A DNA stretch of 64,000 nucleotides, taken from positions 124,001 through 188,000 of the forward strand of contig NIVC01001003.1 of the NCBI GenBank assembly GCA_002269645.1, in the 5' to 3' direction. The notes beneath the pieces are model-generated. The model was not told the origin of the DNA. It saw only the letters and a program-made list of their open reading frames with translations, and made no database searches. Each line of letters begins with the position of its first letter. Positions within the stretch are counted from its first letter, which is position 1. A program made the position numbers and the translations under genes. This document shows positions 2,770 to 63,458 of the stretch, piece after piece. The DNA comes from Macrostomum lignano (Eukaryota).

Positions 2770-3705
2770 TATAGGACTATTCAAGAATCTGTTGAGGTCT
2801 ATAATAAAGACTATTCGAGACAGTGGCGCAACCAGGGGGGGGGCGGGGGGCGGTCGCTATTGAGGTAAAATAAGAACTATTTAAGAAGCTGTTGAGGTCA
2901 AATAAAGACTATTCGAGAAGCTGTTGAGGTCAAATATAGACTATTCGAGAAGCTGTTGAGTTCAAATATAGACTATTCGAGAAGCTGTTGAGGTCAAATA
3001 AGAACTATTTAAGAAGCTGTTGAGGTCAAATAAAGACTATTCGAGAAGCTGTTGAGGTCAAATAAGAACTATTCGAGATGCTGTTGAGGTCAAATAAGAA
3101 CTATTCGAGAAGCTGTTGAGGTCAAATAAAGACTATTCGAGATGCTGTTGAGGTCAAATAAAGACTATTCGAGAAGCTGTTGAGGTCAAATAAAGACTAT
3201 TTGAGAAGCTGTTGAGGTCAAATAAAGACTATTCGAGAAGCTGTTGAGGTCAAAAAAAGACTATTCGAGATGCTGTTGATGTCAAATATAGACTATTCGA
3301 GAAGCTGTTGAGGTCAAATAAAGACTATTTGAGAAGCTGTTGAGGTCAAATAAAGACTATTCGAGAAGCTGTTGAGGTCAAAAAAAGACTATTCGAGATG
3401 CTGTTGATGTCAAATAAGAACTATTCGAGATGCTGTTGAGGTCAAATAAGAACTATTCGAGATGCTGTTGAGGTCAAATAAAGACTATTCGAGATGCTGT
3501 TGAGGTCAAATAAGAACTATTCGAGATGCTGTTGAGGTCAAATAAAGACTATTCGAGAAGCTGTTGAGGTCAAATAAGAACTATTCGAGATGCTGTTGAG
3601 GTCAAATATAGACTATTCGAGAAGCTGTTGAGGTCAAATAAAGACTATTCGAGATGCTGTTGAGGTCAAATAAAGACTATTCGAGAAGCTGTTGAGGTCA
3701 AATAC
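2770..3705. repeat. 32-bp minisatellite (GTCAAATAAAGACTATTCGAGAAGCTGTTGAG), ~27 copies
   Basis: Direct periodicity; interrupted near 2821-2860 by a GC-rich CAGTGGCGCAACCAGGGG MITE-end-like fragment. Confidence 0.95.
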
Positions 3706-9136: not shown

Positions 9137-10044
9137 CCTCTATTGCCCACCTTAATCAAAACCAAAAGGCATTTAAAGCATTTAGAAATCATAATTGATG
9201 CAGCGGTGCAGACTTACCTTGAAATTGAATCGCAGACAGAGGGCCAGAGCTAGTTATTATTGTGTTAAATTGCACGCATTAGGGCGATGGCAAGTTTTAG
9301 CGCAATATCATAGATAAAAAATATTGCTTTAGAGATAATCTGCCCGTTTAATTCAATCGTGTCGCGCCAATTAATTAATTAACGTTTGTTATAAAGCTAA
9401 GACAACGGTCTCGTCAACGGTACGCTATTTAGAGAGAAGAGCTTCTAATTCCTCTACAACCCCTGCGTGCACCGATTTAAATAAATTAAACCTCTCACAG
9501 ACACATTCGAAACGCACACCGCACGGCAGGGGGTCTGAAGGGGGTAAGGAAAGAGCAGAATTAAGAGTTAAGTCACGTGAAAAAACTTGGATTCGCCGCC
9601 TTGTGGGGTGGGGTGGCTTTTTGGACGAGGGATTCACCGCCTGACCTCATAAACCCTTCTTTACCCTTCTACCCCCCATGTTTATGGCCCGGCGCGTGAT
9701 GAGACTGTCCTGGTAGTATGGGGAGGTGGGGTGGGCGCGCTAGAGCCAGTCTGGGCCAATAAGAGCGCACACGGACTGGCTGCATGTAGCGACACACAGC
9801 GAGGCTGTGGCTGGAGGGATTTGGCTTGGAGTGGCTAGATTGCTAGACGCTAGTTCTGAACTCAAAATCACTGGCTTTGTTTACCGGCTAATAAGGACGG
9901 AAGAAAAGCAAAGTAAATATTATTTACTGTTTCTTAAGCTTTATGTGCTCAAAGCTATTCAGTAATCATGCGGTATTAATGACAATGTGTAACTAAAGAA
10001 ATATAACATCAAAATGTTAACTTTTTCAGTATTGAAAAGAGCAG

Positions 10045-11865: not shown

Positions 11866-12374
11866 CTCAACCATAAAAAAGCGCGCAACCTATTTCAGCA
11901 AATTTGGCTAGCAACGTGAACGTCAACTACTAAAAATTATAATTTACTAAACTACCGTAATCTGAAACAGCTGAACAGCAGTATTTCGTTCTATGATATA
12001 TTACCCATGCATAGTCTGGTCTGGTATGTTGGCAGCACCTGCAGCGTCCTGCAAGCAATGGCATCCATGAATGCCATGCAGCGTTAGCCAAACGTCAAAG
12101 TCAATTTACTCTGTATCTATTTCATTTTGAGTGGCCCTGCGGTGAAGCTCTGTTTGGTTGAAGCCAATCCTCTCATTTATTATAGAAGAAAGTTACTTTG
12201 CTATTTTTCCCTCTGTTGCCATGTCCATAATGGTTTTCTAAGTGATTTTTAAGCTAAAAAATTAAGTAAGGAAGCTCTTGTCAGTAAAATATTACTGTAT
12301 CAAATTTATGAATTCTGACATCCTGTATTGAACACGAACACTCATGGATATCAAAAGCTTGCCACCGAAAGTTT

Positions 12375-14270
12375 CTCCAGTGTGTGGATCTAGTGTCTCC
12401 AGGGTGTGGATCTAGTGTCTCGAGTGTGTGGATCTAGTGTCTCCAGTTTGTGGATCTAGTGTCTCCAGGGTATGGATCTAGTGTCTCCAGGGTGTGGATC
12501 TAGTGTCTCCAGGGTGTGGATCTAGTGTCTCCAGGGTGGATCTAGTGTCTCCTGTGTGTGGATCTACAGTGTCTCCGGTGTGTGGATCTAGTGTCTCCAG
12601 GGTGTGGATCTAGTGTCTCCAGGGTGGATCTAGTGTCTCCAGGGTGGATCTAGTGTCTCCAGGGTGGATCTAGTGTCTCCAGGGTGGATCTAGTGTCTCC
12701 TGTGTGTGGATCTACAGTGTCTCCGGTGTGTGGATCTAGTGTCTCCAGTGTGTGGATCTAGTGTCTCCAGGGTGGATCTAGTGTCTCCAGGGTGTGGATC
12801 TAGTGTCTACAGGGTGGATCTAGTGTCTCCAGGGTGGATCTAGTGTCTCCGGTGTGTGGATCTAGTGTCTCCAGGGTGTGGATCTAGTGTCTCCAGGGTG
12901 GATCTAGTGTCTCCAGGGTGTGGATCTAGTGTCTCCAGTGTGTGGATCTAGTGTCTCCTGTGTGTGGATCTAGTGTCTCCAGGGTGGATCTAGTGTCTCC
13001 AGTGTGTGGATCTAGTGTCTCCAGGGTGTGGATCTAGTGTCTCCAGTGTGTGGATCTAGTGTCTCCAGGGTGTGGATCTAGTGTCTCCAGGGTGGATCTA
13101 GTGTCTCCAGTGTGTGGATCTAGTGTCTCCATTGTGTGGATCTAGTGTCTCCAGTGTGTGGATCTAGTGTCTCCAGTGTGTGGATCTAGTGTCTCCAGGG
13201 TGTGGATCTAGTGTCTCCAGTGGGTGGATCTAGTGTCTCCAGTGTGTTGATCTAGTGTCTCCGGGTGTGGATCTAGTGTCTCCAGTGTATTGATCTAGTG
13301 TCTCCGGGTGTGGATCTAGTGTCTCCAGGGTGGATCTAGTGTCTCCGGGTGTGGATCTAGCTCGTACAGTGTCTCCAGTGTGTGGATCTAGTGTCTCCAT
13401 TGTGTGGATCTAGTGTCTCCAGTGTGTGGATCTAGTGTCTCCAGTGTGTGGATCTGGTGTCTCCAGTGGGTGGATCTAGTGTCTCCAGTGTGTTGATCTA
13501 GTGTCTCCGGGTGTGGATCTAGTGTCTCCAGTGTGTTGATCTAGTGTCTCCGGGTGTGGATCTAGTGTCTCCAGTGTGTTGATCTAGTGTCTCCGGGTGT
13601 GGATCTAGTGTCTCCAGGGTGGATCTAGTGTCTCCGGGTGTGGATCTAGCTCGTACAGTGTCTCCAGTGTGTGGATCTAGTGTCTCCATTGTGTGGATCT
13701 AGTGTCTCCATTGTGTGGATCTAGTGTCTCCATTGTGTGGATCTAGTGTCTCCATTGTGTGGATCTAGTGTCTCCAGTGTGTTGATCTAGTGTCTCCGGG
13801 TGTGGATCTAGTGTCTCCAGTGTGTTGATCTAGTGTCTCCGGGTGTGGATCTAGTGTCTCCAGTGTGTTGATCTAGTGTCTCCGGGTGTGGATCTAGTGT
13901 CTCCAGGGTGGATCTAGTGTCTCCGGGTGTGGATCTAGCTCGTACAGTGTCTCCAGTGTGTGGATCTAGTGTCTCCATTGTGTGGATCTAGTGTCTCCAT
14001 TGTGTGGATCTAGTGTCTCCATTGTGTGGATCTAGTGTCTCCATTGTGTGGATCTAGTGTCTCCAGTGTGTTGATCTAGTGTCTCCGGGTGTGGATCTAG
14101 TGTCTCCAGTGTGTTGATCTAGTGTCTCCGGGTGTGGATCTAGTGTCTCCAGGGTGGATCTAGTGTCTCCGGGTGTGGATCTAGCTCGTACAGTGTCTCC
14201 AGTGTGTGGATCTAGTGTCTCCATTGTGTGGATCTAGTGTCTCCATTGTGTGGATCTAGTGTCTCCAGTT
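12375..14270. repeat. 20-22-bp minisatellite (GTGTGGATCTAGTGTCTCCAG(G/T)), ~1.9 kb, with higher-order structure
   Basis: Direct periodicity; variant CTCGTACAG recurs at 13361, 13650, 13939 and 14185. Confidence 0.96.
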
Positions 14271-14769
14271 TGTGAATTTACAGTCTTTCCTTCAACCTGC
14301 GCCTGCAGCGTATATCACACACTATATTGGTGAACCTATTCACCTGACGCATCATCTAAGCGCGACCGTCTGTATATCACCCTTTAGAGGTGAATTTCTG
14401 GCTACGAAGGTACGAGCTATGTCAGATCATGAGATTAAATCAGAACTCATGCCAGACAGACGCGGTGCAAATGCACGCGTTTAAGGCTTGCTTTTAAGTG
14501 CGGAGCAGACATGACGAAATGCTGCATGGATAGAGTTTTGTCACTGGGAATGGTGGCAATGTACTTATACCGCTGTTGCAGTACGCGCCAGGGCTAACCC
14601 CGACAGACATGCAGATATGAGTCACCGCAAGTCAGTATTATAGCTAACCCGAGTCCTTTTGCAACCGCCCCAAAACTCCTCTCTGAGGCTGAGGCTGAGG
14701 CTTTTTCCTCTCAGTAGGCAACGAATTCAGACCTGGATATATTCCTCACTTTATCAAATAAATCTCGAG

Positions 14770-15860
14770 AGAGTGTACCCATGAAGACTTTACCTCGAGA
14801 ATGTATCCATGGATACTTCACCTCGGGAATGTACCCATGAATTAGACTGCACCTTCAGAATGAATGTACCCATAGAGACTTCATCTTCAGAATGTACTCA
14901 TTAGAGACTTCACCTTCAGAATGTATTCATTAGAGACTTCACCTTCAGAATGTACCCATAGATACTTCACCTTCAGAATGTATTCATTAGAGACTTCACC
15001 TTCAGAATGTACCCATAGAGACTTCATCTTCAGAATGTACCCAAAGATACTTCACCTTCAGAATGTACCCATAGAGACTTCACCTTCAGAATGTATTCAT
15101 TAGAGACTTCACCTTCAGAATGTACCCATAGAAACTTTACCTTCAGAATGTAAGCATAGAGACTTCACCTTCAGAATGTACCCATAGATACTTCACCTTC
15201 AGAATGTACCCATAGAGACTTCACCTTCAGAATGTACCCATAGATACTTCACCTTCAGAATGTATTCATTAGAGACTTCACCTTCAGAATGTACCCATAG
15301 AGACTTCACCTTCAGAATGTACCCATAGAGACTTCACCTTCAGAATGTACCCATAGATACTTCACCTTCAGAATGTACCCATAGATACTTCACCTTCAGA
15401 ATGTACCCATAGAGACTTCACCTTCAGAATGTACCCATAGATACTTCACCTTCAGAATGTACCCATAGAGACTTCACCTTCAGAATGTACCCATAGATAC
15501 TTCACCTTCAGAATGTATTCATTAGAGACTTCACCTTCAGAATGTACCCATAGAAACTTCACCTTCAGAATGTACCCATAGAGACTTCACCTTCAGAATG
15601 TACCCATAGAAACTTCACCTTCAGAATGTACCCATAGAGACTTCACCTTCAGAATGTACCCATAGAGACTTCACCTTCAGAATGTACCCATAGAGACTTC
15701 ATCTTCAGAATGTACCCATAGAGACTTCACCTTCAGAATGTACCCATAGAGACTTCACCTTCAGAATGTACCCATAGAGACTTCATCTTCAGAATGTACC
15801 CATAGAGACTTCACCTTCAGAATGTACCCATAGAGACTTTACCTCAAGAATGTACAAGTA
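14770..15860. repeat. 28-bp minisatellite (CTTCACCTTCAGAATGTACCCATAGAGA)
   Basis: Direct periodicity with degenerate flanks. Confidence 0.96.
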
Positions 15861-20185: not shown

Positions 20186-20654
20186 AATCCTAACCTACTC
20201 GAATCTCTCTACTCTCTCTTCGTCCCTCTACCCTCTTGCTACCATCTCTTTACCCTCTCTAAAATCTATCTCTCCTGCCTTTTCTCTAGCCTCTTTACCT
20301 AATTCCTATCTCCCCTCGTACCTTTACCAGTGATATCATCCCTTAAATTTTCTCTCCCGAATTCAGGAGACATAGGAAAATCTGCAAAACTGAATTCCTT
20401 ATTCTCTCAGGGTTTAAAAGTACAGCGCGGGGTGTAAAACTGAGGGGCCCGCAACGCGACAGTTAAGCAACCGGCGCACTACAGTATTAAGTTTCTTTCC
20501 GAGCTGTCGGGATGGGGGCACGGTTCATACCGGATTGCGCGTCTCGTCTGGTGGAGTTTGAGAGGATTAGGGATGAGCACAGCGGCTGTGGGGACGATGG
20601 CGGGTTGCTAACCTTGCTTGCTTTAAATAGAGCTTTGGGAATGTGTCAACCGAC

Positions 20655-21801
<1,147 letters not shown>

Positions 21802-31931: not shown

Positions 31932-34159
31932 CCGGATTGAAGTTGAGTATGCTGCCGGAGATTAAGGAGAAGTGGGCTCGGTCGTCTGGGCTGCCAGGTG
32001 ACGTTTCAAAGCGTACGAAAGCAGGCCGATTCAGGGCTCCTTTGCGAAAGACGTCTAGCTTGAGGGTGCCCGAGCTGAGACAGCGGATCCGATATCGACG
32101 CTGTTCGAACCCCACTACTGACCAGGTCAGGTGGACTCGCTTTCTGTCTGACACTTGTCGGCCATCTCGACCGTTGCTAGCAACAATTTCGAATGCGTCT
32201 TCGATCTCATCTGAACTGCGACGGGGATTATTGAAACGGTATGTCAGACGACCGGAGTTAATGTCAGTCTGTGCGAACCCAACAGCACCAGGCGAATCTC
32301 CCAGCCAAAGATGCCCGAGGGCTGGCTGGGCGGCGACGCGGAACACCGCCGTTTGTGGCACAGCCAGGATTGACCGGTTGTCAAACCGGAAGCCGGCTCC
32401 GCTGGCGCTGAATCCTGCCAACTCGCTGGGACATGCCGCGCGCAGAATTGTCACATTACTGTCGTCACCACTGTTGGAAGGCGATCTAACAACGATGCTA
32501 AACGTATGGGTTCGATCGGTCGCCTGTCGCATTACTGCCGGGTCGTCGATTACAAATAGGAAACTATCTCGACCGCTTGGTGAAACATTGGTGCTTCGAT
32601 ATTCCACCATGCTGGAATTCAAATCGGTTTGGCTGAAGGTGTCGTCAGGTCCGAGGCCGACGGATCTGGAGCGCACCAATATGCCATGCTTGGGCAAAGA
32701 AATCAAACGGTAGTGCGGTTCTGGACGGGTGGTAACAGCACTGCGCCCGGTCGTCATCAATAAATTTTCTGGTCCTATGTTGGCCGCCGAATGAGCCGCG
32801 AGAGACAATGGAACCGATTTCAGAAGCCGAGGAGGTGGCACAGATGGAGACAGGGGTAGAAGTCGAACGAACCAGCTGCTGGAAGCTACTTGGTTGTCCC
32901 AAGCAGCATTGAGTTGTATCAAAATGTCAACCGGTTCGCTACAGCAACTAGCATTAAACACTATAAGCCCAGTCGCTATGTCTGATGCTAGCAACTCCGT
33001 CGCCACAGCCGACGAATTTTGTTCGCCTTTCTTACAGAGCTTCCAGCAACTGCCATTCGGACGAATCGCCTGAAGACTGGCTGAAGGAGGCTGCGTACCA
33101 AATACGCGAACCTTGACATCAGTCTCCGCTATGCTGACAGTTGATCCAACCTCTAATTCAGTCGGGTTCGTTATCAACTGAAGCGGAGAATGTGGACTTG
33201 AAGAACTAGGCAGAACTTGAATTTCCAAGCGAGCCAACGAAGCCGAGAATTTTCCATCTTCTGGGACGAACTGAGCTTGCTCAACAGAAACTCCTGAGTT
33301 ACCTTCCTCTAAGTTGCCAGTGAGAGGTGGCACATGGACAAACAGTCGGTTGAGTTGCACATCCCGTTGCGTGATTTTCTCGCCGAGCCTAAGCGGTGTC
33401 AAATTCAAGCGGGTGTGCCGCGACCAACTCAGCAATGTCGAAGCCACAAGCAGTTGAGCTCTGCTAGGAAGCTGTACAAGCGATAGTGTCAAGTTATCCT
33501 TTGGCGTATCTCGATCTCTAATTAGCAAGTGGCGCTCGGTTACGGGCACTGTCTCTCCTGGTCTTAGTTGCAGTCTGTCTGTTGGCTCTACTAGCCTAGG
33601 CGGTAAATCGTTGGTTGTAATGATGGAGATGCGGCATTTTCGGACTACACGATACACTGGGTCCCTGGCCTCGATAACAAAGCTATCAGAAAGTGAGGTC
33701 ACGTCCTGATCCTGCTTATAAACCAGGCTCATGTTTCCTGCAAGTTCGCTCATGGTGAAGTCACGATTTGCATTCAAAGTCACCTGCTCAGCGGTTTCTG
33801 TGCTCAGCCAATGACGGTACAGCGTGCCAATTTCCGGCAGGTCGACGATCTTCAGTTTAATATCTTCTTCGGGTTTGTCGGCGTCGCTCACAGACAGAAT
33901 CAAAGTGTCGAGGATGCGTGTTTCACCTTTTTGAATTGAGAAATCAGACAGGAAAAGACACGGTGGCTCATCTGTCACGGGGTAGATAACAACCCTGACG
34001 GGCACAGAAGTAGAGTCTCGGCGACCATCAGATGCGCGAATTCCAAATGTGTCATTGGTGTGCTCAACGCCGCAATGCTGCGTATGAACGAAGAAAACGT
34101 GGCCGTCTGTTAGCTGCCGTTTGGTGAACTCGAGCACCGTAGTCTCGCTCCCGCTATGG
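31932..34159 (-). CDS. FREM1: FREM1-like exon 4 (CSPG repeats + Calx-beta start)
   Basis: Intact ORF 31927..34194; repeated FSQTDL/FAQTDI..GRLTY motifs; VVGFEQRRY Calx-beta start; G|GTTAGT donor, phase 1. Confidence 0.92.
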
Positions 34160-34238
34160 CTGTAAATTATTTTAGAGCGCAAATTAAGAACCATTGATCA
34201 ATATGAAAGAAAGGAATACGAGATAAAGTTAATCTTAC

Positions 34239-39081: not shown

Positions 39082-41211
39082 CGCGACCAGGAACGGGTGC
39101 CGGAAGTTCTGTGGCTAAGGGGTTATATGTTCCTTCTTGAGCATTGAATTTGTTTGCTTTGCGCTCAATATTATATCGGACTGATGTTAGTACTGATGCA
39201 CTCCAATTGGTCAGTTGATCTAGACCAATGGGCCCATCTCATAAATTTTTCGAGTGTTGCTTCACAATAAGAGAGCGTCTAGAGCGTGTTTCTCCCGTTA
39301 TAACTGCGACAACTTTCCATTGCTACTATCAGTAATACCTACTGTTCAGCCTTGCAAATTTTTTTTTCTGCAAGTTAGCAAAATACGGTTTTAAATACGA
39401 AAACTAGCATCGCATTTTTCTTTGGATGTGTAAAGTTCTATTTTCTTGATGAAAAAATACATTAAAGCTTAGGAGCTGGTGGGTTCTGGTCTTACTTCCG
39501 ATTTCTGACAGAAGGCGTTGATATGCATACCGGATGCAAACTAAACGAACAGAGCTAAAGCACAAAATCTGAACCCGACTGAAACCCGAGAATTATGAAG
39601 GTTATGAGGCTAGTTAACGAATTTGCTTAAATAAAAGCTTTAATTGAAATGCAAGCTAACTCTGTATTGCCCGAGTCAGTTGGCTCAATACATCTATCTA
39701 TACAGAAAAGCCTATAGAGCTCGGAAATTCGGCAGAATAGACAGCCTAAAACAGGCAAAGCAAAGAGATCAGATAGGCAAGACGGATCCAATTAAAATGA
39801 TCAAAAAGGCTTGAGGCAAGTCAGACAATAGAAGCCAGAAAGCAAGCACAACAATGTAGGTCACAGCGACGAATAGCAAGAATATAGAAGCCCCTATCCA
39901 TTCCAGATTAAGACAAAAGCAAGGCGGTTGACACGCGAAGGCAGCCAGGCGGAAAATATTAATGAGCACGACGAATGCCTAAACCGCAGGTGACCAACCC
40001 CAAGGAGCGTGGCAACCGAAAGAGCTGTCTCAGCCATCCTGGCAAGTTAAATCTTTGTATCAATTTGTGCTGCAAGTTGATTACACTGAGTAAACCGCGA
40101 TCTCAGATTTTAAGCCCTCTCTAAAAGTGCAGCAGTCACTATGCTAGGCAAGCTCTGGAGTTCGGAATACCCGTAGAAAGTAGATCGATGTTAAGAAGGT
40201 TAAGAAGGAAATGAAAAAAATTGAAAGGCTTACAAAGTTTGGATCCTTTGGAATTATCTTCGAAGAGAAATCGGAGAAATCGGAGCGGTACACAGCCGTG
40301 GAGTGTTGAACTAAAAGAGCTTGTTCGAGAACGGAGAGTCACACTGAGGCTAGTTTAAGTATGCGTGACCCCATACAATCCAAAACCATTTTCTACAGCT
40401 GTCAATATTTAGCGCAAATTTTTCCTGTGTCAATATGCCACTGACTGTTAGACCCAGTATTGTGTGTTTTTATTCCTTAGATGAAGCACTAAACTTCGTT
40501 GAGCCATTAGAGAAGAAGTCAAGTAGTTGAGAATTTTACACAGCTAGGTAGAGAGCTATCAAGCCTTCGTCAAGTTTTTTAACTCAACACTGAAATTTTC
40601 TGCACCCCGCAGCTGAGACTAGCATCGCATTGTCGTATTGGGTTTGTAAAGCTAAGAACTCAGTTGAGTCAAAGAATCTTTGGACTTGGTCATGCCGTCC
40701 TTTCATAACTACGAGCGTATTGAAGAAAGTCTAGATTTCTTTGATTCATTAGTTTTATTTAATTAATATAGTTAAAAAATAGTACATAGGTGACCAACGA
40801 AGGCAGAGCTGATGCAGACACTTGTGGTCGATGTGCTGATGAAGAGAGGCTTGGCAAGGCTGCACAAAGTTGCAGTACTGATTGGCGCACGGGGGTTGCA
40901 TTGAATACACTTGCGCTTATGGAAAAAATCCGACCTTCTGGCAGAATCGTCGAATATCTCAACGGTCGGGAGGGTTGGCGACTTGGTTCTTCTTTGAGAA
41001 AGTGCGCAACAGAAAGTCAGCTCGAGTTCTGGAATTTCTGCGTGCATCCTTGTACGACCTCATCTTTGATATACTAGCGCCGTTCTTGCTTCCAGCATTT
41101 GGTGTGCTAGCAATGAGCAGTTCTCAACTAGGCAAAGAGCACCACAATCTTATATCATAGTCACAAACTCCAATGCCTACCTTCGCCAGTAGATTGACTT
41201 CCACGTTGCTA

Positions 41212-41714
41212 GAGAGGACAGAAGGGAGAGGAGAGGAGAAGAGAGAGGGGAGAGGAGAGAGAAGAGAATAATAGAGGGGAGAGGAGAGAAGAGAGGGGAG
41301 AGGAAAAAAGAGAGGGTAGTGGAGAGAAAACAAGGGAGAGGAGAGAAGAGAGAGGGGAGAGGAGAGGAGAGAAGAGAGAGGGGAGAGGAGAGGAGAGAGA
41401 GGGGAGAGGAGAGGAGAGAGAGGGGAGAGGAGAGGAGAGAGAGGGGAGAGGAGAGAAGAGAGAGGGGAGAGGAGAGAAGAGAGAGGGGAGAGGGGAGGAG
41501 AGAGAGGGGAGAGGGGAGGAGAGAGAGGGGAGAGGAGAGAAGAGAAAGGAGAGGAGAGAAGAGAGGGGAGAGGAGAGAAGAAAAGGGAGAGGAGGAGAAG
41601 AGAGGGGAGAGGAGAGGAGAGAGAGGAGAGGAGAGAAGAGAAAGGAGAGGAGAGAAGAGAGGGGAGAGGAGAGAAGAGAGGGGAGAGAAGAGAGAGGAGA
41701 GAAGAGAGGGGAGA

Positions 41715-41748
<34 letters not shown>

Positions 41749-41815
41749 GAGAGAAGAGAGAGGAGAGAAGAGAGGGGAGACGAGAGAAGAGAGGGGAGAA
41801 GAGAGAGAGGGGAGA

Positions 41816-41850
<35 letters not shown>

Positions 41851-41881
41851 GAGAAGAGAGGGAGAGAGAGAGAGGGGAGAC

Positions 41882-41912
<31 letters not shown>

Positions 41913-41950
41913 GGGAGAAAAGAGAACAGGAGAGAAAAGAAAGGATAGAG
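41212..41950. repeat. Polypurine GAGAG(G/A) array
   Basis: Direct inspection. Confidence 0.95.
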
Positions 41951-41991: not shown

Positions 41992-42489
41992 ATTTAGGGC
42001 GCCAAAATGAGTCTTAGATGAAGCAAAAATCAGTACAGTACTGACAAACACCTGTACCCAAAATACGGTAATATAGGGACTTTTTGTTTTTGATTCCTGG
42101 AATCGTACCCCCTAAACAATCATGAAATCCCTGGCGACGCTCCAGTTTCAGCTGTTTACGAGTAAAATTGCAGCCAAATTTAGCAGCAACATCTGCTTCT
42201 CCGAGCACAGCTGGCCGGATGCATTTAGGTAGGCGGTTTTGATTGCTTATAATTAATGTTTACCTTGACAGGATAGCAGAATAATGCCGAATATCATCCG
42301 AGAAGAAGGGTGAGTCTCAAGTCTCAGTTCCATGCCGGAATCCGCATTGAATTCGACTCGGGCAGCGATGATTGGCCGCTGCCTACGAATCACTCGGCAG
42401 GCGCGTGAATTCTGACTGCATTTAAGCGGAGCAGTGGACTGGCCTCGGGACTGCGAATTTAATGCCTCACTGTCGCAACTACAGCTAAC

Positions 42490-42637
42490 ATGAAGATTCT
42501 ATTGGTTGCTATCACCATCTGTCTGTTGGTCTTTGCTGCGACTAGCGCCTCAGCTATTAGCAGGAACCGTCCTCTAGTGCAGCCGGTTGCCAAGGCGGAT
42601 CACCTGGCTATCAAGCGACTGGCCAACAGAGTCACTT
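42490..42637 (+). CDS. Secreted Cys-rich cationic peptide precursor, exon 1 (signal + propeptide)
   Basis: MKILLVAITICLLVFAATSASA signal; KR dibasic site; strong T|GTAAGC donor, phase 1. Confidence 0.8.
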
Positions 42638-42724
42638 GTAAGCCGAGCCGTACTAAAGCCGAAGATTCAGTTCAGAAAAATCAAGTGAATTCAACACTCT
42701 CTCTCTCCTTGCTTATGCTTTCAG

Positions 42725-42849
42725 ACAGCTGGACATTCGTCTGCAACCTTTACTGCAGGATACTGGGCGGCCGATACTCCCGGCGCTGCGTCCGCAACTA
42801 TGCCACCACGGTCTTGGCCGAACGTTGTCCCTGCTTCTGCTATAAATAA
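42725..42849 (+). CDS. Secreted Cys-rich cationic peptide precursor, exon 2 (defensin/mytilin-like 6-Cys domain)
   Basis: ctctccttgcttatgctttcag|AC acceptor; 87-nt intron; YSWTFVCNLYCRILGGRYSRRCVRNYATTVLAERCPCFCYK*. Confidence 0.8.
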
Positions 42850-43268
42850 CTAATTGGGTAGTGATGTGGCGAATGCCATAGTTCGCGTTCACGATCGAAG
42901 CAATGATTATAAAACTTTTGTTGTGATTAGAATGTCTGCAAGCCCGATTGCCCGCTTTAAAACTTTGAAATAGACCAAGTTTTTTAATCCAACATTCGGG
43001 AACAACAACAAAATGAGCAAAATCTGTGAAATTTTGGCTTTCGAAGGCTTTATTTAACGGTAACTTGGAAGTCAGTGAAAAATTGAAAAATTGAAAAAAA
43101 ATATTCTACTGCAATTACAGGGAGAAATATTTTATGCCGGAACATTCATATAATTTTTCATTGTTGACATTGTCTGACAAACAAAAATTTTATTCAACGA
43201 ATTCCTTTCAATATCACCCTATATCAGCTTATGTAGAACTAACTGAATGTGGAACCACAGATCATGTA

Positions 43269-44613
43269 CTTCGGCTGTCCGGAAAGTCGTGAGAATGTGT
43301 CAATTAAGCAAGAAAGCAGCAAGCTGTTGACGTGGCACACAGAAATTTTCAATAATAGACTCATATAGTTCTATGGTGAAAATTCTTGTTACTCTAGTAG
43401 CAAAATTGGGGGCAGGGGCGAGCTCAGTGCTCAATAGCAAATGCAACGCGGTGATCAAGCTTGAAAATTTTGACAGCGAGTTCTTCAAAATGGAAGACTT
43501 CCAGGGTTATGCCTATGCTAGATACCGTCTTGGAATCTCCGCTCTCAGCTGCCATGACGAGCTGCTTAAAGTTTATGGAGATGCTGCACCAGGTCAGTCA
43601 ACGGTTTACAGATGGTATTCGAAGTTCTGTGACGAAGCATTTCCCCGGTCTCAGCTCCTCGAACTGGCCGGCCACGGTCAACAAGGACAGCGGAACTGAT
43701 CGAAACCTGCCGAGCTCTTATTGAAGAGGATCCAAAAGTTAGTGTCCGAGACCTCGCTGACTTTTTGGAAGTTGGAAAAACAACAGTGCGCGAAATTTTG
43801 ACTGAGGATTTGCACCTTCGAAACGTTTCTGCTGTCTGGGTTCCGCATGCTTTATCCGAGGAGAACAAGACTGCTCGCATCAATTGTGCCAAGCAAATTC
43901 GCAGGCTTTTTTACAACAAAGGGCATGGAAAACTTTTGCGACAAGTACGTGGTGGAGGATGAGACATGGGTGTACCTGAACAACACTGGCACAAAGCAAA
44001 ACAACAGGTGCTAGCTTGGCCAAGGAGATCATCGGCCCCAGGTTGTCAGGCACTCAGTCGGCAATGCAAAGACAATGCTTCTGGTTGCTTTTACTCCAAG
44101 CAAGCGCTTCTCCATTGAATCCACAGCCCCAAAGCAAACTGTTGATGCAAATGGCATAGTTGAGTTCATTCGGCACACGGGAGACCTATGGCGTACTCTC
44201 GAGTCAAGGCCAATTCATCTGTCGGATGTTCTTTGGCAGTGGGACAATGCGCGACCTCACGTGGCTCGTTCTGTGCAGCAGTACATGGAGTCCCGTGGAG
44301 TTCAGCTGGTGTTTCAGAGTCCTTACAGCCCAGACTTCAATCTGTGCGACCGTTTTTTGTTCAGTTGGATGAAGACTGATTTCTCCAGGCGAGTGTTCAG
44401 CGATCACAATCAATTTCGAGAAGCTGCGTTGCAATAGGCAAGAGGCCTTGACGAAGATTGCTTGAAAAGAGAGGTTCAGCGACTCGTTGACCATTGCCAA
44501 GCTGTAATCAACGCAAGGAAAGATTACATTACCAACTAGTACAGTTATCGTGTTTTCTGATAGTTCTGACTGGTTTTTTAAATACATTCTCACGACTTTC
44601 CGGACAGCCGGAG
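43269..44613 (+). mobile_element. Tc1/mariner (DD34D mariner) element, 1345 bp
   Basis: TIRs CTTCGGCTGTCCGGAAAGTCGTGAGAATGT / ACATTCTCACGACTTTCCGGACAGCCGGAG; TA TSD at 43267-68 and 44614-15. Confidence 0.96.
43490..44539 (+). pseudogene. Decayed mariner transposase
   Basis: TVYRWY..F, TGRP, WVPH.L, DETW, WDNARPH and SPYSPDFNLCD (34 residues between catalytic Asps). Two frameshifts (~43650, ~43920) and two in-frame TAG stops. Confidence 0.93.
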
Positions 44614-44749
44614 TACATCACCTGTTCATAAATTTTACGTTTATTATAAATAATTGGAATCGGAATTCTTTAAAAACAATGCTTGCAACAGAAATCATAG
44701 TAAAAAAAAACAATTTTTGCAAAGAAACTTAAAGGGTTTCACCTAGATT

Positions 44750-54300: not shown

Positions 54301-54880
54301 TTTCCCTAAGACTACATGAAAATTCTTTTATGCTTTACATGACACTTCTTTTAGGTCTACATTTAGGTCTATTTTTGCAACTTACCTTGGCTAGGCCCCT
54401 TGCCAGCCAGCCAGATTGGCTAGGTGTTGCACATGTGACATGTATGATTCAACTGGTGCAGATCCCAATACTATACCATTGCTAACCAAGTCCAAATCAA
54501 AGCTCCAATTACAAATAGAGCTGCCAATAGAAATATATTCACTTAGAAGTTTTTTGTTGACATTCCTTGCTATTATATATGTATGTTGTAATACAATATC
54601 ATAGCTATCAATATATACTTTTTATATCAATAGCATCTATTCCAGTAAAAAGTACAACTGTACTTTAAAGCTAGGTAATTTCCTTTTGGTCAGGCACTTA
54701 CTTGTCTCAGCCAATTGAACTTTACAGTCATCCAACCCACTTGTGCGCACCTGTTCTTGCAATTCCAAGTAATTCAATTGCACCCAACATTGTGCAAACT
54801 TTTATTGTCCTGTTCATTTCTTCTCAGACCAGTGCACAGTGCTCAGCACTCCGGCATTCTTCGGAATAAAATCTGCAAAT

Positions 54881-55476
54881 ATGAGAAACGACATCAAACG
54901 AGCCAGGCGGGGCGGCTCGCCCCATTCCGTTGAGCCTTCCAAGGTTGTATTCGTTCGCGGCATTCTATCCAATACTAGCGAGCGCGAGGTTCAGCGAGTA
55001 TTTGAACAGTATGGCGACGTGAAGTGCGTATTCCTCATACCCAAGCAGCACCAGGCACTGGTGGAATTTGCCACCCTATCCGAGGCTGAACAATTGATTC
55101 GCCGAGCGGAATCCGGCGAACTTGTGCACATCCGGGATCAGCCAGTTGGCATCGGGTTCTCCAAGCAGGCCCGCATCACCGATCCGAACAAACTCTACCT
55201 GTCGCACGATCCGACTCGCATTCTACTGTTCACCCTGTTCCATATTGAGGTGCAGATTGATTGCGAGACGTTCAGACAAATCTGCGGCCGCTACGGTCGC
55301 CTCATGCGAGTCTGCCTAACTAAAAACGGCATTGACACGCAGGCTATTGTGGAATTCAGTCGAGTTGAAGAGGCCGCCGAGGCCAAGCCGAATCTTAACG
55401 GGGCGGACATCTACGAGAATTGCAATACGCTCCGAGTTGAATATGTCACCGAGATGGCCTACGATGTGCTTGCTAG
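54881..55476 (+). CDS. hnRNP L-like RRM protein, exon 1 (RRM1, RRM2)
   Basis: PSKVVFVRG, QALVEF, ILLFTL, QAIVEF, AKPNLNGADIYENCNTLRVEY match hnRNP L/PTB RRMs. AG|GTTTGC donor, phase 2. Confidence 0.88.
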
Positions 55477-55799
55477 GTTTGCCACCTCTTCTTTCTTAAA
55501 TGCTGCCTTGTCATCGAGAGTATTAGTTGCGTGTTGTTTAATAATGGCTTTGTCCATACTTACACGCACGCACACTTTGTGCCAGCGGTTGGTTTGATAA
55601 CTCCGAAAGCATCTCCATAACTTTAGCGATGTTCCTCCGTTCTCTTGTTCGCTTCTTCCTATTTTTGTTTCCATTAAACTGAAAAAGATTATCTATTATC
55701 AATTCTACTGTAATTACTAACTGACCTCATATGTCAGTTAAATAATTGGTTAATTATTTTAGTTATTAATACTTATTACTATAAATTTTTCTATGGCAG

Positions 55800-56393
55800 A
55801 GATCCGCGCTCGGTTCTGGACGAATGGCCGGTTCGAAATCAGCAACGCGAGCTGCCGTTGCCAACGCCGGGCGGCGCGGCGGCTCACAGGTCACGTGACC
55901 GGTCCCGATCGCGCTCCCGGGATCGCTACGGGCCAGCTCCGTCCCGACGGCCCCGACGCTCTCGCTCGCCGATTCCTAGCAGTGGAGGCGGCGGCGGCAG
56001 TCGCGACGTGGTGTCGAATTTGATCGGCCTGGCCAGCCAGCTGTCGGACATCCGGGTGCCCGGCCTGGACACCAGAGGCATCATGCAGTACCTGCAGGCC
56101 GCCGCCGCAGCTGCCGCTGTCTCGGAGCATCAGGGCGGAGGCGGCGACAGTCGCAGCGGGCGCCGGTCGCGCAGTCGGGATCGGGCCGGCGACTATCATC
56201 GCGCCAGCAGTAGCGGCGGCGGCGGCCGTCAGCAGTCGGGATCCTCATCTGGCTGCATTCTGTTTCTATGCGGCCTGAGCGACCGGATGAACTGCGACAG
56301 GCTCTTCAATCTGCTGTGCATGTACGGCAACGTGCGCCTGGTCAAGTTCTTTGCTAGCAACACCAACCAGGCCATGGTGGAGATGTCTGATAG
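55800..56393 (+). CDS. hnRNP L-like exon 2 (RS-rich linker, RRM3 first half)
   Basis: ggcag|A acceptor; MNCDRLFNLLCMYGNVRLVKF...QAMVEM is diagnostic of hnRNP L RRM3; AG|GTAAGA donor. Confidence 0.9.
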
Positions 56394-56739
56394 GTAAGAA
56401 TTTATACCTGATGTAAAATCAGGCAGAGGCGATTTAAATTAAAAGCGATGTAAAATCGGTAGAATCGGCGTAGATGTCGCTTTTTGACCAAAAATGCGAC
56501 TTACCTATAAAAATTCCTGAGAAAAGTTTACGTAGTTTTTGGTAAACAGTAGGAATAACTATGACTGTATTATTAACGAAAAATGCCTCGTGATACAATT
56601 AGCATTGCGTCTGTACTTTGGATGGGCATTTTTGCGGCTTACCTTGGCTGGGCCCCTCGGCCGGGTGTATGCTCCAGCAAATGTATATTATTTTACTATT
56701 AAAAGCGCAATCAATTCCCAACTACCAAACTACCAACAG

Positions 56740-57301
56740 GGCCTCCGCTGATATGTGCGTTCGCTTTCTGCACAATCGCACAGTGCTGGGCCGTCGCATT
56801 GTGGTGGACTATGCGCGTCAGGACTTTCTCAAGAACACGGAGAATCTCACTAACCTGCCGGATGGTACGCCCAGCGTCAAAGACTTCTTCGCTAGGGAGC
56901 GCTCGTTAAATAGGTTTCTAACGCCGGAAAAGGCTCGCAAGAATCACCCCATGGAGCCCTGCACCACCGTGTACTTTTGGGGCGTGCCGCCGGACAGTAA
57001 CGAGCAGGACTTGTGCAACGTGCTGGAGAATCTGGACGCGCCCAGGCCGCACGATGTGTCATTTTTTAATAACCAAGGCATCCGCAGCGGCCTCATGATG
57101 TTCGATAACGTTCGCGACGCGCTTGACGCCATCTGTCTGGCTAACCATGCCGAAATCACGGTCGGCGGCCGGACCTGCATGCTGAAGCTCACCTTCTCGG
57201 AGTCGCGTAGGCGCGGACCCGACGCTGCTGGCGATAGGAACGGCGGCGGAGGCGGCGGCGGGCGCGGCGGAAGGCCTCGGGGTGGCGGCCGACGACCTTA
57301 A
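56740..57301 (+). CDS. hnRNP L-like exon 3 (RRM3 end, RRM4, RGG tail)
   Basis: caacag|G acceptor; LPDGTPSVKDF...LNRF, SGLMMF...ALDAICLANH, LKLTFS. Spliced CDS is 1752 nt (583 aa + stop). Confidence 0.9.
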
Positions 57302-57974
57302 TTATCTTTTAAAATAAGAATACTGCTTCGGACGGACTCATTAATTTATTACCTTGTTACTTTAATTAGGCCTGCGTCCGGTGAACTATAATAAACGGTG
57401 GCTTTTAAACTGGAATATGGGATAATACAATTAGTTCAATTATAATAATTTCATAGACGTAACAGTAATATTATGTGGGGAAGCTTTGTAGCATTCGTTG
57501 TATTTCGCTGTTCAACAGGTTCGTTGCTGCTACCGTTTTTACTTGCTCGTCTGTTTCTTTGTTGTTGTTGTTGTGCCGTTAAAATTCTAATGCTTTTTTT
57601 GCAACACGTAGGCCTCTTAGGCAAACAGCTATGCTAAAAACGACTATTTCATCTTTCGTTAAGTTTTAACAACAGTTTTTTATGACCATTTGTTTATATT
57701 GGTCAGTCGGCATCTTAGTAAAGTCAATACTACTTACTATTCTCTATTTAAGTAATACGTGCAAAATTATTTTTTGTCTCTTGTTCTGTGTTTTAAAAAA
57801 CTAAAATTATTAACTATTATACGAATTGCTTAATATGAAGCAATCGTTTATTAAAATAATAATATTTAGCCTAGCGCTCTTAATATCAATAACAGTGGCG
57901 CATCGCTTAATGAGCAGCATTTGCTCTTTGTTATTGAGCAATTTAACTTATTTTGCTTTTTGACTTCGGATCAG

Positions 57975-58975
57975 AGCACTCTCCCAGTCCCTATTCCGTC
58001 AGAAGAGCACTCTCCCAGTCCCTATTCAGTCAGAGGATCACTCTCCCAGTCCCTATTCAATCAGAGGATCACTCTCTCAGTCCCAATTCAATCAGAGGAT
58101 CACTCTCTCAGTCCCAATTCAGTCAGAAGAGCACTCTCCCAGTCCCAATTCAGTCAGAAGAGCACTCTCCCAGTCCCTATTCAATCAGAGGATCACTCTC
58201 TCAGTCCCAATTCAGTCAGAGGAGCACTCTCCCAGTCCCCGATTCAGTCAGAGGATCACTCTCCCAGTCCCAATTCAGTCAGAAGAGCACTCTCCCAGTC
58301 CCTATTCAATCAGAGGATCACTCTCTCAGTCCCAATTCAGTCAGAGGAGCACTCTCCCAGTCCCCGATTCAGTCAGAGGATCACTCTCCCAGTCCCCATT
58401 CAGCCAGAGGATCACTCTCCCAGTCCCCATTCAGCCAGAGGAGCACTCTCCCAGTCCCCGATTCAGTCAGAGGAGCACTCTCCCAGTCCCCATTCAGTCA
58501 GAGGAGCACTCTCCCAGTCCCCATTCAGCCAGAGGATCACTCTCCCAGTCCCCGATTCAGTCAGAGGATCACTCTCCCAGTCCCGGATTCAGTCAGAGGA
58601 GCACTCTCCCAGTCCCCATTCAGCCAGAGGATCACTCTCCCAGTCCCCATTCAGTCAGAGGATCACCCTCCCGCTCCCAGTCCCCATTCAGTCAGAGGAG
58701 CACTCTCCCAGTCCCCATTCAGTCAGAGGAGCACTCTCCCAGTCCCCATTCAGTCAGAGGAGCACTCTCCCAGTCCCCATTCAGTCAGAGGAGCACTCTC
58801 CCAGTCCCCATTCAGTAAGAGGATCACCCTCCCGCTCCCAGTCCCCATTCAGTCAGAGGATCACTCTCCCAGTCCCCATTCAGTCAGAGGAGCACTCTCC
58901 CAGTCCCCATTCAGTCAGAGGATCACCCTCCCGCTCCCAGTCCCCATTCAGTCAGAGGATCACTCTCCCAGTCCC
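57975..58975. repeat. 31-bp minisatellite (CACTCTCCCAGTCCCCATTCAGTCAGAGGA(G/T))
   Basis: Direct periodicity. Confidence 0.95.
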
Positions 58976-60019: not shown

Positions 60020-61110
60020 TGTGAGTCTCTGAGGGTATCTGAGAGTCTTTGAGGGCATCTGAGAGTCTCTGAGGGCATCTGAGGGTCTCTGAGGGCATCT
60101 GAGAGTCTCGGAGGGCATCTGAGAGTCTCTGAGGGCATCTAAGAGTCTGAGGGCATCTGAGAGTCTCTGAGGGCATCTGAGAGTCTCTGAGGGCATCTGA
60201 GAGTCTCTGAGGGCATCTGAGAGTCTCTGAGGGCATCTGAGAGTCTCTGAGGGCATCTGAGAGTCTCTGAGGGCATCTGAGAGTCTCTGAGGGCATCTGA
60301 GAGTCTGAGGGCATCTAAGAGTCTGAGGGCATCTGAGAGTCTCTGAGGGCATCTGAGAGTCTCTGAGGGCATCTGAGAGTCTCTGAGGGCATCTGAGAGT
60401 CTCTGAGGGCATCTGAGAGTCTCTGAGGGCATCTGAGAGTCTCTGAGGGCATCTGAGAGTCTCTGAGGGCATCTGAGAGTCTCTGAGGGCATCTGAGAGT
60501 CTGAGGGCATCTGAGAGTCTCTGAGGGCATCTGAGAGTCTCTGACGGCATCTGAGGGTCTCTGAGGGCATCTGAGAGTCTCTGAGGGCATCTGAGAGTCT
60601 CTGACGGCATCTGAGGGTCTCTGAGGGCATCTGAGAGTCTCTGAGGGCATCTGAGAGTCTCTGAGGGCATCTGAGAGTCTCTGAGGGCATCTGAGAGTCT
60701 CTGAGGGCATCTGAGAGTCTCTGAGGGCATCTGAGAGTCTGAGGGCATCTGAGAGTCTGAGGGCATCTGAGAGTCTCTGAGGGCATCTGAGAGTCTCTGA
60801 GGGCATCTGAGAGTCTGAGGGCATCTGAGAGTCTGAGGGCATCTGAGGGCATCTGAGAGTCTGAGGGCATCTGAGAGTCTCTGAGGGCATCTGAAAGTCT
60901 CTGAGGACATCTGAGAGTCTCTGAAGATATCTAAGAGTTCATAAAGGTGTCTGAAAGTCTCTAAAGGTATCTGAGAGTCTCTGAAGATATCTAAGAGTAC
61001 ATAAAGGTGTCTGAAAGTCTCTAAAGGCATCTGAGAGTCTCTGAAGATATCTAAGAGTTCACAAAGGTGTCTGAAAGTCTCTGAAGGTATCTGAGAGTCC
61101 CTGAAGGTAT
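60020..61110. repeat. 20-bp minisatellite (CTCTGAGGGCATCTGAGAGT) in CCDC102-like intron 1
   Basis: Direct periodicity with 18-bp variants. Confidence 0.96.
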
Positions 61111-61376
61111 CGGAGAGTCGGTATCAGTTCTTAAAGAATGACATTCGAACTAAAGAAGATCAATGGTTCAGGGTCCCTGACTGCATTGGGGTCATTCAGT
61201 CATTGAGACTCACTGAGAAATTTGTTTGACAGCCCTGATGCTAGGCAGAGGTAATTAGGAAATCCTAAAAATTGATTGTAAGGCCGACGAAAGAGATGAG
61301 CGAGAGAGACTCGTACATAGGCTGAGAACACAGAACCAACAGTATCATGAGCCCCAAACTGCCCTGTCAATACCAG

Positions 61377-62004: not shown

Positions 62005-63310
62005 GGGTGTCTGTGCTGGATGGGGTGTGTCTGTGATGGATGAAGAGTGTCTGTGATGGATGGGGGTGTCTGTGATGAATGAAGAGCTGTCTGTGATGGA
62101 TGGGGGTGTCTGTGATGAATGAAGGGCTGTCTGTGATGGATGGGGGCGTCTCTGATGAATGAGGTATCTGTGATGGGGGGTTTCACAAACTCGAAATTTC
62201 ACAACGTCGAAAGCACCTTCTTTCACAAGGTCGAAATTTCACAACGATGAAAACTACTGCATAGTTCTTGCTATATTAAGTTTTCGATGTTGTGAAATTT
62301 CGACCTTGTGAAAGCATCCCCTGTGATGAATGGGGGTGTCTGTAATGGATGATGAAGGTTGTTTGCGATGGATGGGGGTGTCTGTAATGGATGATGAAGG
62401 TTGTCTGCGATGGATGGGGGTGTCTGTAATGGATGATAAAGGTTGTCTGCGATGGATGGGGGTGTCTGTGATGGATGGGGGTGTTTGCGATGGATGATGA
62501 AGGTTGTCTGCGATGGATGGGGGTGTCTGTGATGGATGATGAAGGTTGTCTGCGATGGATGGGGGTGTCTGTGATGGATGATGAAGGTTGTCTGCAATGG
62601 ATGGGGGTGTCTGTGATGGATGAAGGGCTGTCTGTGATGGATGAAGGGCTGTCTGTGATGAATGAAGGGCTGTCTGTGATGGATGGGGGTGTCTGTGATG
62701 GATGGGGATGTCTGTGATGGATGAAGGGTGTCTTCGATGGATGGGGGTATCTGATGGATGAAGGGTGTCTGTGATGGATGAAGGGTGTCTGTGATGGATG
62801 AAGGGTGTCTGTGATGGATGGGGGTGTCTGTGATAGATAGGGGTGTCTGATCGATGGCCATCTCTATGATGGATGTGTCTGTGATGGATGGGGGTGTCTG
62901 TGATGGATGGGGATGCCTGTGATGGATGGGGGTGTCTGTGATGGATGGGGGTGTCTGTGATAGATGGGGGTGTCTGTGATGGATGGGGGTGTCTGTGATG
63001 GATGGGGGTGTCTGTGATGGATGGGGGTGTCTGTGATGGATGAAGGGTGTCTTCGATGGATGGGGGTATCTGATCGATGAAGGGTGTCTGTGATGGATGA
63101 AGGGTGTCTGTGATGGATGAAGGCTGTCTGTGATGGATGAAGGGTGTCTGTGATGGATGGAGGTGTCTGTGATGGATGGGGATGTCTGTGATGGATGAAG
63201 GGTGTCTTCGATGGATGGGGGTATCTGATCGATGAAGGGTGTCTATGATGGATGAAAGGTGTCTGTGATGGATGGGGGTGTCTGTGATGGATGAAGGGTG
63301 TCTGTGATGT
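62005..63310. repeat. 20-bp minisatellite (GGGTGTCTGTGATGGATG(GG/AA)) in CCDC102-like intron 2
   Basis: Direct periodicity. Confidence 0.96.
62177..62321. mobile_element. Small foldback MITE inserted in the 20-bp array
   Basis: TTTCACAAGGTCGAAATTTCACAAC is inverted as GTTGTGAAATTTCGACCTTGTGAAA; GGGG/CCCC ends; TSD ambiguous inside the repeat. Confidence 0.65.
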
Positions 63311-63458
63311 ATGGAGACCTATAAATGGTTTCCTAGAAGTCATGAATGGTGACTGGGAATGGCTGTCTAAGAGTATCCAAATGATGTGCAAACTTTTAAA
63401 GACGCAGTGCGCAGTTGTCTACTATCTACATAGCGCAATAAATTCAACTGCCGCACAG

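Follow-up and report, generated by a model that had tools for sequence, protein, structure and literature searches.

Mlig016290.g1 of Macrostomum lignano, an annotated secretory-precursor gene from a small family with a candidate six-cysteine peptide

In a 64,000-nucleotide stretch of Macrostomum lignano DNA, which we refer to in its entirety as the window, an open reading frame of 119 codons raises the question of whether it is read as it stands or encodes, after splicing, a small secreted cysteine-rich peptide, and, in the latter case, to which known peptides the product is related and what role it may play. A sequence-only reading of the locus had proposed a hidden two-exon gene for a cationic six-Cys peptide of the defensin or mytilin type, possibly an undescribed antimicrobial peptide (AMP). 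Here, the gene model, the relatives of its product, its predicted fold, and the candidate functions are considered in turn.

Gene structure, annotation, and promoter core

Positions 32466-52849 of the window were found to be 100% identical to NIVC01001003.1 of assembly Mlig_3_7, and the gene is Mlig016290.g1 (BOX15_Mlig016290g1) of M. lignano, a free-living marine flatworm. The proposed 87-nt, in-frame GTAAGC...TTTCAG intron and the 90-aa precursor were borne out by the sequence and by identical public annotations (Table 1). Removal of the intron, which interrupts a Tyr codon as T/AC, yields the spliced product of 42490-42849, MKILLVAITICLLVFAATSASAISRNRPLVQPVAKADHLAIKRLANRVTYSWTFVCNLYCRILGGRYSRRCVRNYATTVLAERCPCFCYK. 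UniProt entry A0A1I8GG96 ("Secreted protein") is identical to this product, as is PAA73604.1 except for an eight-residue stretch read from the 5' UTR, and the same 90 aa were predicted independently by MAKER on the earlier ML2 assembly. A recently duplicated second copy of the gene, Mlig016290.g2 (PAA52855.1), differs at 2 residues and carries an identical intron. The gene models of Mlig_3_7 were built by genome-guided RNA-seq transcript assembly (PMC5730564), and the spliced transcript of Mlig016290.g1 is supported indirectly, through these annotations. Because PAA73604.1, PAA52855.1, and A0A1I8GG96 carry exactly the same splice, the gene is neither hidden nor mis-annotated, contrary to what the sequence-only reading had supposed. 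It is an ordinary annotated, uncharacterized gene, the product of which has already been flagged as an AMP-like candidate.

Table 1. Features of the Mlig016290.g1 locus, in window coordinates
Feature	Position	Strand	Sequence or remark
Inverted CCAAT-type box	42370..42379	+	GATTGGCCGC; ATTGGC core kept at 3/3 paralogous loci (alignment)
Promoter motif	42401..42408	+	GCGCGTGA; invariant at 3/3 paralogous loci (alignment)
TATA-like box	42421..42426	+	TTTAAG; invariant in paralogs; ~40 nt upstream of annotated transcript 5' end
5' UTR segment	42466..42489	+	Translated by GenBank as LTVATTAN ahead of Met, "partial" CDS
Open reading frame	42490-42849	+	360 nt, 119 aa unspliced
Coding exon 1	42490..42637	+	Signal peptide, pro-region, and the opening 6 1/3 codons for the 47-aa C-terminal peptide
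Signal peptide	42490-42555	+	MKILLVAITICLLVFAATSASA; SignalP positive (PMC10414684, S5 File); predicted cleavage following residue 20 or 22
Pro-region ending in KR	42556-42618	+	ISRNRPLVQPVAKADHLAIKR
Intron	42638..42724	+	87 nt, GTAAGC...TTTCAG, phase 1; polypyrimidine tract ahead of AG
Coding exon 2	42725..42849	+	Entire six-Cys domain, SWTFVCNLYCRILGGRYSRRCVRNYATTVLAERCPCFCYK; stop TAA 42847-42849

The openness of the 87-nt intron in the reading frame is a matter of chance and is unremarkable. When the interior of the intron was shuffled, the frame was kept open in 27% of cases, which, multiplied by 1/3 for a length that is a multiple of three, gives ~9%. The homologous introns of the two paralogs described below are 106 and 85 nt long and interrupt the same Tyr codon in phase 1; both disrupt the frame and carry stop codons. 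Members of the family must therefore be spliced, and the intron at this locus is open by accident. Collectively, the matching annotations, the conservation of the intron, and a dN/dS below 1 support the two-exon gene model at 42490-42849 far beyond what chance would give.

Sequence conservation between the three loci extends upstream of the coding region, where it spans ~70 nt and includes the three promoter elements of Table 1. The "partial" GenBank CDS runs from 42466, and the assembled transcript therefore begins at or just before this position; the first in-frame upstream stop lies at 42460. At the other end of the gene, neither AATAAA nor ATTAAA was found within 450 nt past the stop codon of Mlig016290.g1, with TATAAA alone present, at 42908.

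The secretory precursor and its paralogs

Analysis of the precursor agreed with most of what had been proposed for it. The signal peptide is positive in SignalP 4.1 (PMC10414684, S5 File), and the Lys-Arg dipeptide named as a processing site is present and is invariant in all paralogs. The 47 residues past K42-R43, LANRVTYSWTFVCNLYCRILGGRYSRRCVRNYATTVLAERCPCFCYK, contain 8 K+R and 1 D+E (net charge, +7; pI, 9.5) and six Cys with spacings of 3, 10, 12, 1, and 1, so that a recount reproduced the 47-aa cationic peptide with the array CxxxC-x10-C-x12-CxCxC that had been described.

Paralogs were then sought across public proteins. A phmmer search of 1.84 billion representative proteins returned only two more relatives, both from M. 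lignano: Mlig033545 (g1-g3; E = 8e-18) and Mlig029134 (g1-g2; E = 1e-15). When 5.8 billion proteins were searched with a profile, no member outside M. lignano was found and one sequence was added, a mis-extended Mlig029134 model; a scan of metagenome contigs with the mature-peptide profile gave 152 pattern matches, 0 of which were confirmed. Among the proteins searched, this is a small family restricted to M. lignano. Its three loci, Mlig016290, Mlig033545, and Mlig029134, are dispersed on different scaffolds, each in 2-3 recently duplicated copies, and no tandem copies were detected by tblastn in the window or within +/-10 kb around each paralog.

Identity among the three loci is 52-58%. The six Cys, K42-R43, L44, Y50, W52, G64, Y67, and the ERCPC segment are invariant in the family, as are the hydrophobic core of the signal peptide and the pro-region pattern ISRNxPL..P.A..H.A.KR. 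Invariant positions account for 23 of the 43 residues of the prepro part and 14 of the 47 residues of the mature part. CxxxC and CxC keep their spacing throughout the family; the last Cys moves by one residue between paralogs, the Cys spacings of which are 3, 10, 14, 1, and 2. The paralogs carry net charges of +5, +3, and +1, compared with +7 at Mlig016290, and the strong cationic charge is peculiar to the Mlig016290 locus and is not a family trait.

To describe the constraint on these sequences, dN/dS was computed pairwise between loci by the Nei-Gojobori method. Overall values between loci were 0.35-0.53, and purifying selection has therefore acted on real coding sequence. The mature part had a dN of 0.41-0.49, about twice that of the prepro part (0.18-0.25). 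By region, dN/dS was lowest in the pro-region (0.17-0.24) and 0.29-0.75 in the mature part, values that rest on tiny counts (~15-30 synonymous sites per region). There was no sign in dN/dS of the diversifying selection that is common in AMP families, which fits an antimicrobial reading of the gene poorly, as does the variable charge of the paralogs.

The product has been encountered before in a published screen. Irvine et al. (2023, PLoS Pathog; PMC10414684) passed WormBase ParaSite proteomes through SignalP 4.1, ProP 1.0, and 11 AMP predictors. In the S5 File of that study, fAMP-LP group 60 comprises the ML2 MAKER model, Mlig016290g1, and Mlig016290g2, and the 90-aa product matches the ML2 entry of the group letter for letter. 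Members of group 60 are scored SignalP "Y" and are positive in 10-11 of the 11 AMP predictors (90.9-100%); the authors state that such predictors are biased toward Cys-rich peptides (PMC10414684). The AMP-like character ascribed to the peptide by the sequence-only reading is thus upheld, and its novelty is not.

ProP did not predict the KR cleavage in group 60 in the published pipeline, and the group 60 peptides were therefore taken as 68-74 aa long, labeled "Peptide >60AAs," and discarded by the length filter (PMC10414684). Cys-rich candidates were, moreover, excluded from the assays of that study altogether, and Mlig033545g3 was listed as "Ungrouped 530," an implausible 22-aa fragment unlinked to group 60 (PMC10414684). 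Whether the precursor is cleaved at KR is uncertain, the dipeptide being invariant yet negative in ProP. Gene structure, fold, and disulfide logic lay outside the scope of the screen; the gene structure is added here, and what is new is the three-locus family with its conserved Cys, KR, intron position and phase, and promoter core. Beyond the S5 File, the main text of the literature searched names neither the gene nor its paralogs, whether by identifier or by accession, and the three family genes are missing from the supplementary tables of five M. lignano studies, including those on reproduction-related RNA-seq and on germline and neoblasts.

Comparison with known cysteine-rich peptides and predicted fold

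Relatedness to defensins and mytilins, as proposed for this peptide, found no support in Pfam or PDB. In Pfam, the spliced and unspliced products and all family members matched no relevant family, the sole listed match (Peptidase_C3G, E = 0.17) being noise. Sequence and profile searches of PDB gave chance matches at E >= 0.09 and, up to E = 10, neither a defensin nor a toxin, and the mature-peptide profile had no match at E <= 10. What the family does possess is the motif pair of the cysteine-stabilized alpha/beta (CSab) scaffold, with C56xxxC60 and C84xC86 (precursor numbering) invariant. The classical six-Cys CSab array, C...CxxxC...C...CxC, has a Cys ahead of the helix, bonded to the strand that follows it, and in most cases a GXC gamma-core in front of the beta-hairpin, whereas both are missing in the Mlig016290 family. 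No paralog has a Cys between KR and CxxxC, N-terminal to the helix, and a sixth Cys instead follows CxC. The GXC gamma-core is absent throughout the mature peptides, in which GGRYSRRC, GGRYRRYC, or RGRYYYSRC leads up to C3.

Among individual CSab peptides, the scorpion toxin tamapin (alpha-KTx 5.4; 2LU9, 6D8S) resembles the family in having CxxxC in the helix, predicted here, and CxC in the C-terminal paired segment. The hhalign comparison with tamapin gave a probability of 11.6%, with a local alignment of VCNLYCRILGG to RCELSCRSLGL (tamapin sequence verified against 2LU9). The C3-C4 loop, however, is 12-14 residues long in the family and 4 in tamapin (4-6 in the CSab scaffold), the family has an extra Cys past CxC relative to that scaffold, and none of these similarities is significant.

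Mytilin B of Mytilus (2EEM), a mussel AMP of the CSab type, is likewise cationic and has CxxxC followed by a long loop and a C-terminal R-C-x-C-x-C array, with RGRCYCKC in the place of AERCPCFC here. Its 8 Cys, with spacings of 3, 3, 4, 11, 1, 1, and 2 and four disulfides, contrast with the 6 Cys of the family, spaced 3, 10, 12-14, 1, and 1-2. An hhalign value of 1.1% over 13 columns was obtained, pairing YATTVLAERCPCF with YVSVLYRGRCYCK (mytilin sequence verified against PDB), and 2EEM was not matched by the family profile in PDB at E <= 10. Mytilin precursors consist of a signal peptide, the mature peptide, and then a C-terminal extension. Unlike these, precursors of the Mlig016290 family have an N-terminal pro-region and reach their stop 0-2 residues past the Cys array. 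The two belong to different phyla, and homology between them is undetectable.

A further label attached to the family, the automatic UniProt name ShKT of paralog A0A267ER24, was rejected. Pfam ShK matched 0 of 5 members at E <= 10 and hhalign gave 0.2% (ShK sequence verified against 1ROO); the ShKT array ends in C-x3-C-x2-C, whereas CxxxC stands first in the Mlig016290 family.

A resemblance in overall layout is also seen in another M. lignano gene for a secreted peptide, Mlig016917 (fAMP-LP group 61), which encodes a signal peptide, a KR dipeptide, and a W three residues ahead of CxxxC. It has six Cys in the array CxxxC-x5-C-x14-CxCxC, and its two exons are separated by an intron in phase 1, a few codons past KR. 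An hhalign comparison of the family with Mlig016917 aligned all Cys over 43 columns at a probability of 4.8%, and BLASTP identity was 25%. Mlig016917 was, however, missed by phmmer, and its promoter is unlike that of the Mlig016290 family. On these sequence features, a kinship of Mlig016917 with the family is possible.

The fold was examined using AlphaFold2 (AF2). For the full precursor, predicted without an alignment, the mean pLDDT was 58.6, with W52-I62 modeled as a helix and R66-R69 and C86-Y89 as strands. For the 47-mer, predicted with a five-sequence alignment, the best model reached a pLDDT of 75.5 and the other four 40-69; in the best model this helix recurred, together with one bridge, R66-F87, and there was no beta-hairpin. 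Both runs, at low confidence, thus place a helix on W52-L63 and pair R66-R69 with the C-terminal CxCxC segment. A Foldseek comparison of the 47-mer model with PDB gave four matches at E <= 10, the top one and the only small-peptide match among them being tamapin, which at E = 7.8 is not significant (TMq, 0.42; TMt, 0.57; 30% identity over 37 columns). Matches to the low-confidence full-length model were all at E >= 2 and are meaningless. In the CSab fold that had been proposed for the peptide, two disulfides hold an alpha-helix against an antiparallel beta-sheet. For this peptide the fold is conjectural: both AF2 models contain the helix and pair the residues that follow it with the C-terminal segment, the better model lacks the hairpin, confidence is low, and the Foldseek E is 7.8.

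Since neither the CxxxC spacing, which lies in the predicted helix, nor the CxC spacing varies and the last Cys is mobile, a CSab-type C1-C4, C2-C5 staple with an additional C3-C6 pair would be the likeliest disulfide arrangement, going by the alignment and the models. Taken together, the CSab and mytilin resemblance is a motif-level lead, uncontradicted by the models, and not membership in either group.

Candidate functions of the released peptide

As a whole, the locus is best explained as an annotated secretory-precursor gene for a KR-released disulfide peptide that is a candidate antimicrobial effector, a reading to which we give slightly less than an even chance. The transcript of Mlig016290.g1 begins ~40 nt downstream of the ATTGG / GCGCGTGA / TTTAAG core, and one phase-1 intron is removed. 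The signal peptide would be cleaved off after residue 20-22, and an enzyme of the prohormone-convertase type would then cut after the invariant Lys42-Arg43. The product released in this way would be a 47-aa, aromatic-rich, +7 peptide with three disulfides, comprising a putative CSab-type C1-C4/C2-C5 staple and a C3-C6 tether of the long loop. The peptide is predicted to act as an extracellular effector, perhaps in antimicrobial defense through a membrane or cell-wall target. For the +7 paralog, physicochemistry and the AMP predictors make antimicrobial host defense the leading candidate. A more specific version, in which the Mlig016290/033545/029134 family, possibly joined by Mlig016917, would consist of highly diverged three-disulfide CSab-type defense peptides with the third disulfide shifted to the C-terminus, appears doubtful.

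The same secreted peptide may instead be a lineage-specific, non-immune gland product (seminal-fluid/prostate, pharyngeal, rhabdite, or adhesive-gland), an explanation that we regard as unlikely, albeit a credible one. Searches of 1.84 and 5.8 billion proteins placed the family in M. lignano only, which is consistent with it, as is a small, secreted, and moderately fast-evolving product (mature dN of 0.41-0.49 between paralogs). Two studies also favor it, as they describe many lineage-restricted secreted reproductive proteins in M. lignano (PMC5977470, PMC7336406). The absence of the gene and both paralogs from the reproduction RNA-seq and germline/neoblast supplementary tables is weak evidence against such a role, and no sequence feature indicates a particular gland.

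Alternatively, the KR-cut precursor could be a prohormone or signaling precursor, with either the pro-peptide (ISRNxPLxxPxAxxHxA) or the Cys-rich domain as the ligand; we consider this rather improbable. Several features of the family point in this direction: K42-R43 is invariant, the pro-region is the most constrained part (dN/dS of 0.17-0.24 versus 0.29-0.75 for the mature part), invariant positions are denser in the prepro part (23/43) than in the mature part (14/47), and the charge of the Cys domain varies from +1 to +7. Other M. lignano hormone-like precursors were, in addition, scored as AMP-like by the published pipeline (PMC10414684). There is, however, no Gly ahead of KR as an amidation signal, there are no repeated peptide copies, ProP predicts no cleavage, Pfam and PDB searches revealed no similarity to a hormone family, and the regional substitution counts behind the dN/dS comparison are tiny (~15-30 synonymous sites). 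Toxin and AMP precursors, too, typically combine a conserved prepro part with a mature part that diverges.

A channel blocker of the CSab scorpion-toxin type, directed against prey, predators, or competitors, is very unlikely. It draws on tamapin, both as the top Foldseek match (TMq, 0.42; TMt, 0.57) and as the partner of VCNLYCRILGG in the hhalign pairing with RCELSCRSLGL. Both matches fall short of significance (Foldseek E = 7.8; hhalign, 11.6%), the N-terminal Cys of alpha-KTx is absent, and the C3-C4 loop has 12-14 residues in place of the 4 in tamapin. To our knowledge, no venom apparatus is known in the diatom-feeding M. lignano.

Finally, a non-functional locus, whether a chance ORF with chance splice sites or a decaying pseudogene, at which the stop-free in-frame intron (chance, ~9%) could hint by suggesting an unspliced random ORF, is effectively refuted by the agreement of two annotation pipelines on the spliced product, the retention at three loci of six Cys, KR, intron phase and position, and promoter core, the dN/dS of 0.35-0.53, and duplicated copies that lie only 2 residues apart.

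Innate-immune effectors of flatworms are almost unknown, and the one systematic screen found the canonical lophotrochozoan AMP groups, CSab included, to be lacking (PMC10414684). In that work, BLAST searches in 33 flatworm species returned no CSab, big-defensin, or myticalin homologues, and the authors called the lack of CSab peptides surprising (PMC10414684). Mlig016290 is among the Cys-rich candidates that were set aside there, and it is redefined here as a candidate 47-aa, KR-released peptide. If the diverged CSab reading were true, it would fill this "surprising" platyhelminth gap and provide the first cysteine-rich AMP family of free-living flatworms. M. lignano offers RNAi, transgenesis, and a single-nucleus atlas (PMC11398382; Mlig_4_5 identifiers), and the function of the peptide is therefore directly testable in the animal itself.

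Sequence surroundings of the peptide gene

The peptide gene lies between an upstream annotated neighbour encoding a large Cadherin_3/Calx-beta/Lectin_C protein and a downstream RRM protein gene, neither of which is related to it. The latter is annotated in L001, the recently duplicated copy of the locus, and its counterpart in the window was placed by homology to the L001 gene. A degenerate mariner/Tc1-like transposon remnant was found 0.4 kb downstream of the peptide gene, with ORF fragments in different frames matching HTH_48 (E = 4e-6) and DDE_3 (E = 2e-7). This remnant is missing from L001, so the two copies differ here by an insertion or deletion.

An imperfect purine-rich array (AGAGAGG) is located 0.5 kb upstream of the peptide gene (TRF periods of 7, 19, and 33; GC skew, 0.46), and yields long spurious ORFs, SPL-rich and GEERRE-rich, on both strands and in several reading frames. 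Minisatellite arrays are unusually dense in the window, with ~25 different ones that have repeat periods of 15-44 nt and lengths of up to 1.9 kb, and a (CTAT)n array of 1.1 kb is also present.

Positions of features at the peptide-gene locus and at related loci
Feature	Sequence	Position (nt)	Strand
Cadherin_3/Calx-beta/Lectin_C gene	window	32466-34164	- (opposite to peptide gene)
Purine-rich array	window	41211-41950	
Promoter core (~70 nt)	window	42366-42432	
Promoter core	L003 and L005 (paralogous loci)	about 9870-10000	
Transposon remnant	window	43266-44650	
RRM protein gene	L001	16583-19058	
RRM counterpart	window	about 54800-57300	+
Mlig016917g3	L006 (NIVC01002402.1)	5001-5381	
CT-rich array, strongly strand-skewed	window	4519-6038	
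Other repeat arrays (examples)	window	1-349, 2856-3704, 10659-11865, 12370-14274, 14770-15855, 20654-21801, 57974-58975, 60023-61119, 62321-63314	

Paralog records and Mlig016917

Public records disagree on the names of the paralogs, Mlig033545 (UniProt A0A267ER24) included, with "ShKT domain-containing protein" and "SCP domain-containing protein" among those in use. No ShK or SCP/CAP match was obtained in a Pfam scan of five peptide-family members. Some paralog models are over-long at the N terminus, running through UTR or upstream sequence, as in the misextended Mlig029134 models P0008 (161 aa) and P0009 (144 aa).

Mlig016917g3, a secreted M. lignano peptide of flatworm AMP-like peptide (fAMP-LP) group 61, possesses the cysteine array CxxxC-x5-C-x14-CxCxC, with a W three residues ahead of its CxxxC, and an 81-nt phase-1 intron a few codons past its KR site. 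A distant relationship between Mlig016917 and the peptide family is possible, but their comparison gave an hhalign probability of only 4.8%.

Promoter core of the peptide family

The promoter core is conserved across the three paralogous loci, which share the elements ATTGGC, GCGCGTGA, TTTAAG, and GGAGC. Synonymous divergence among their coding sequences is near saturation, yet the core has been kept, suggesting, from sequence comparison, that regulation is common to the three loci.
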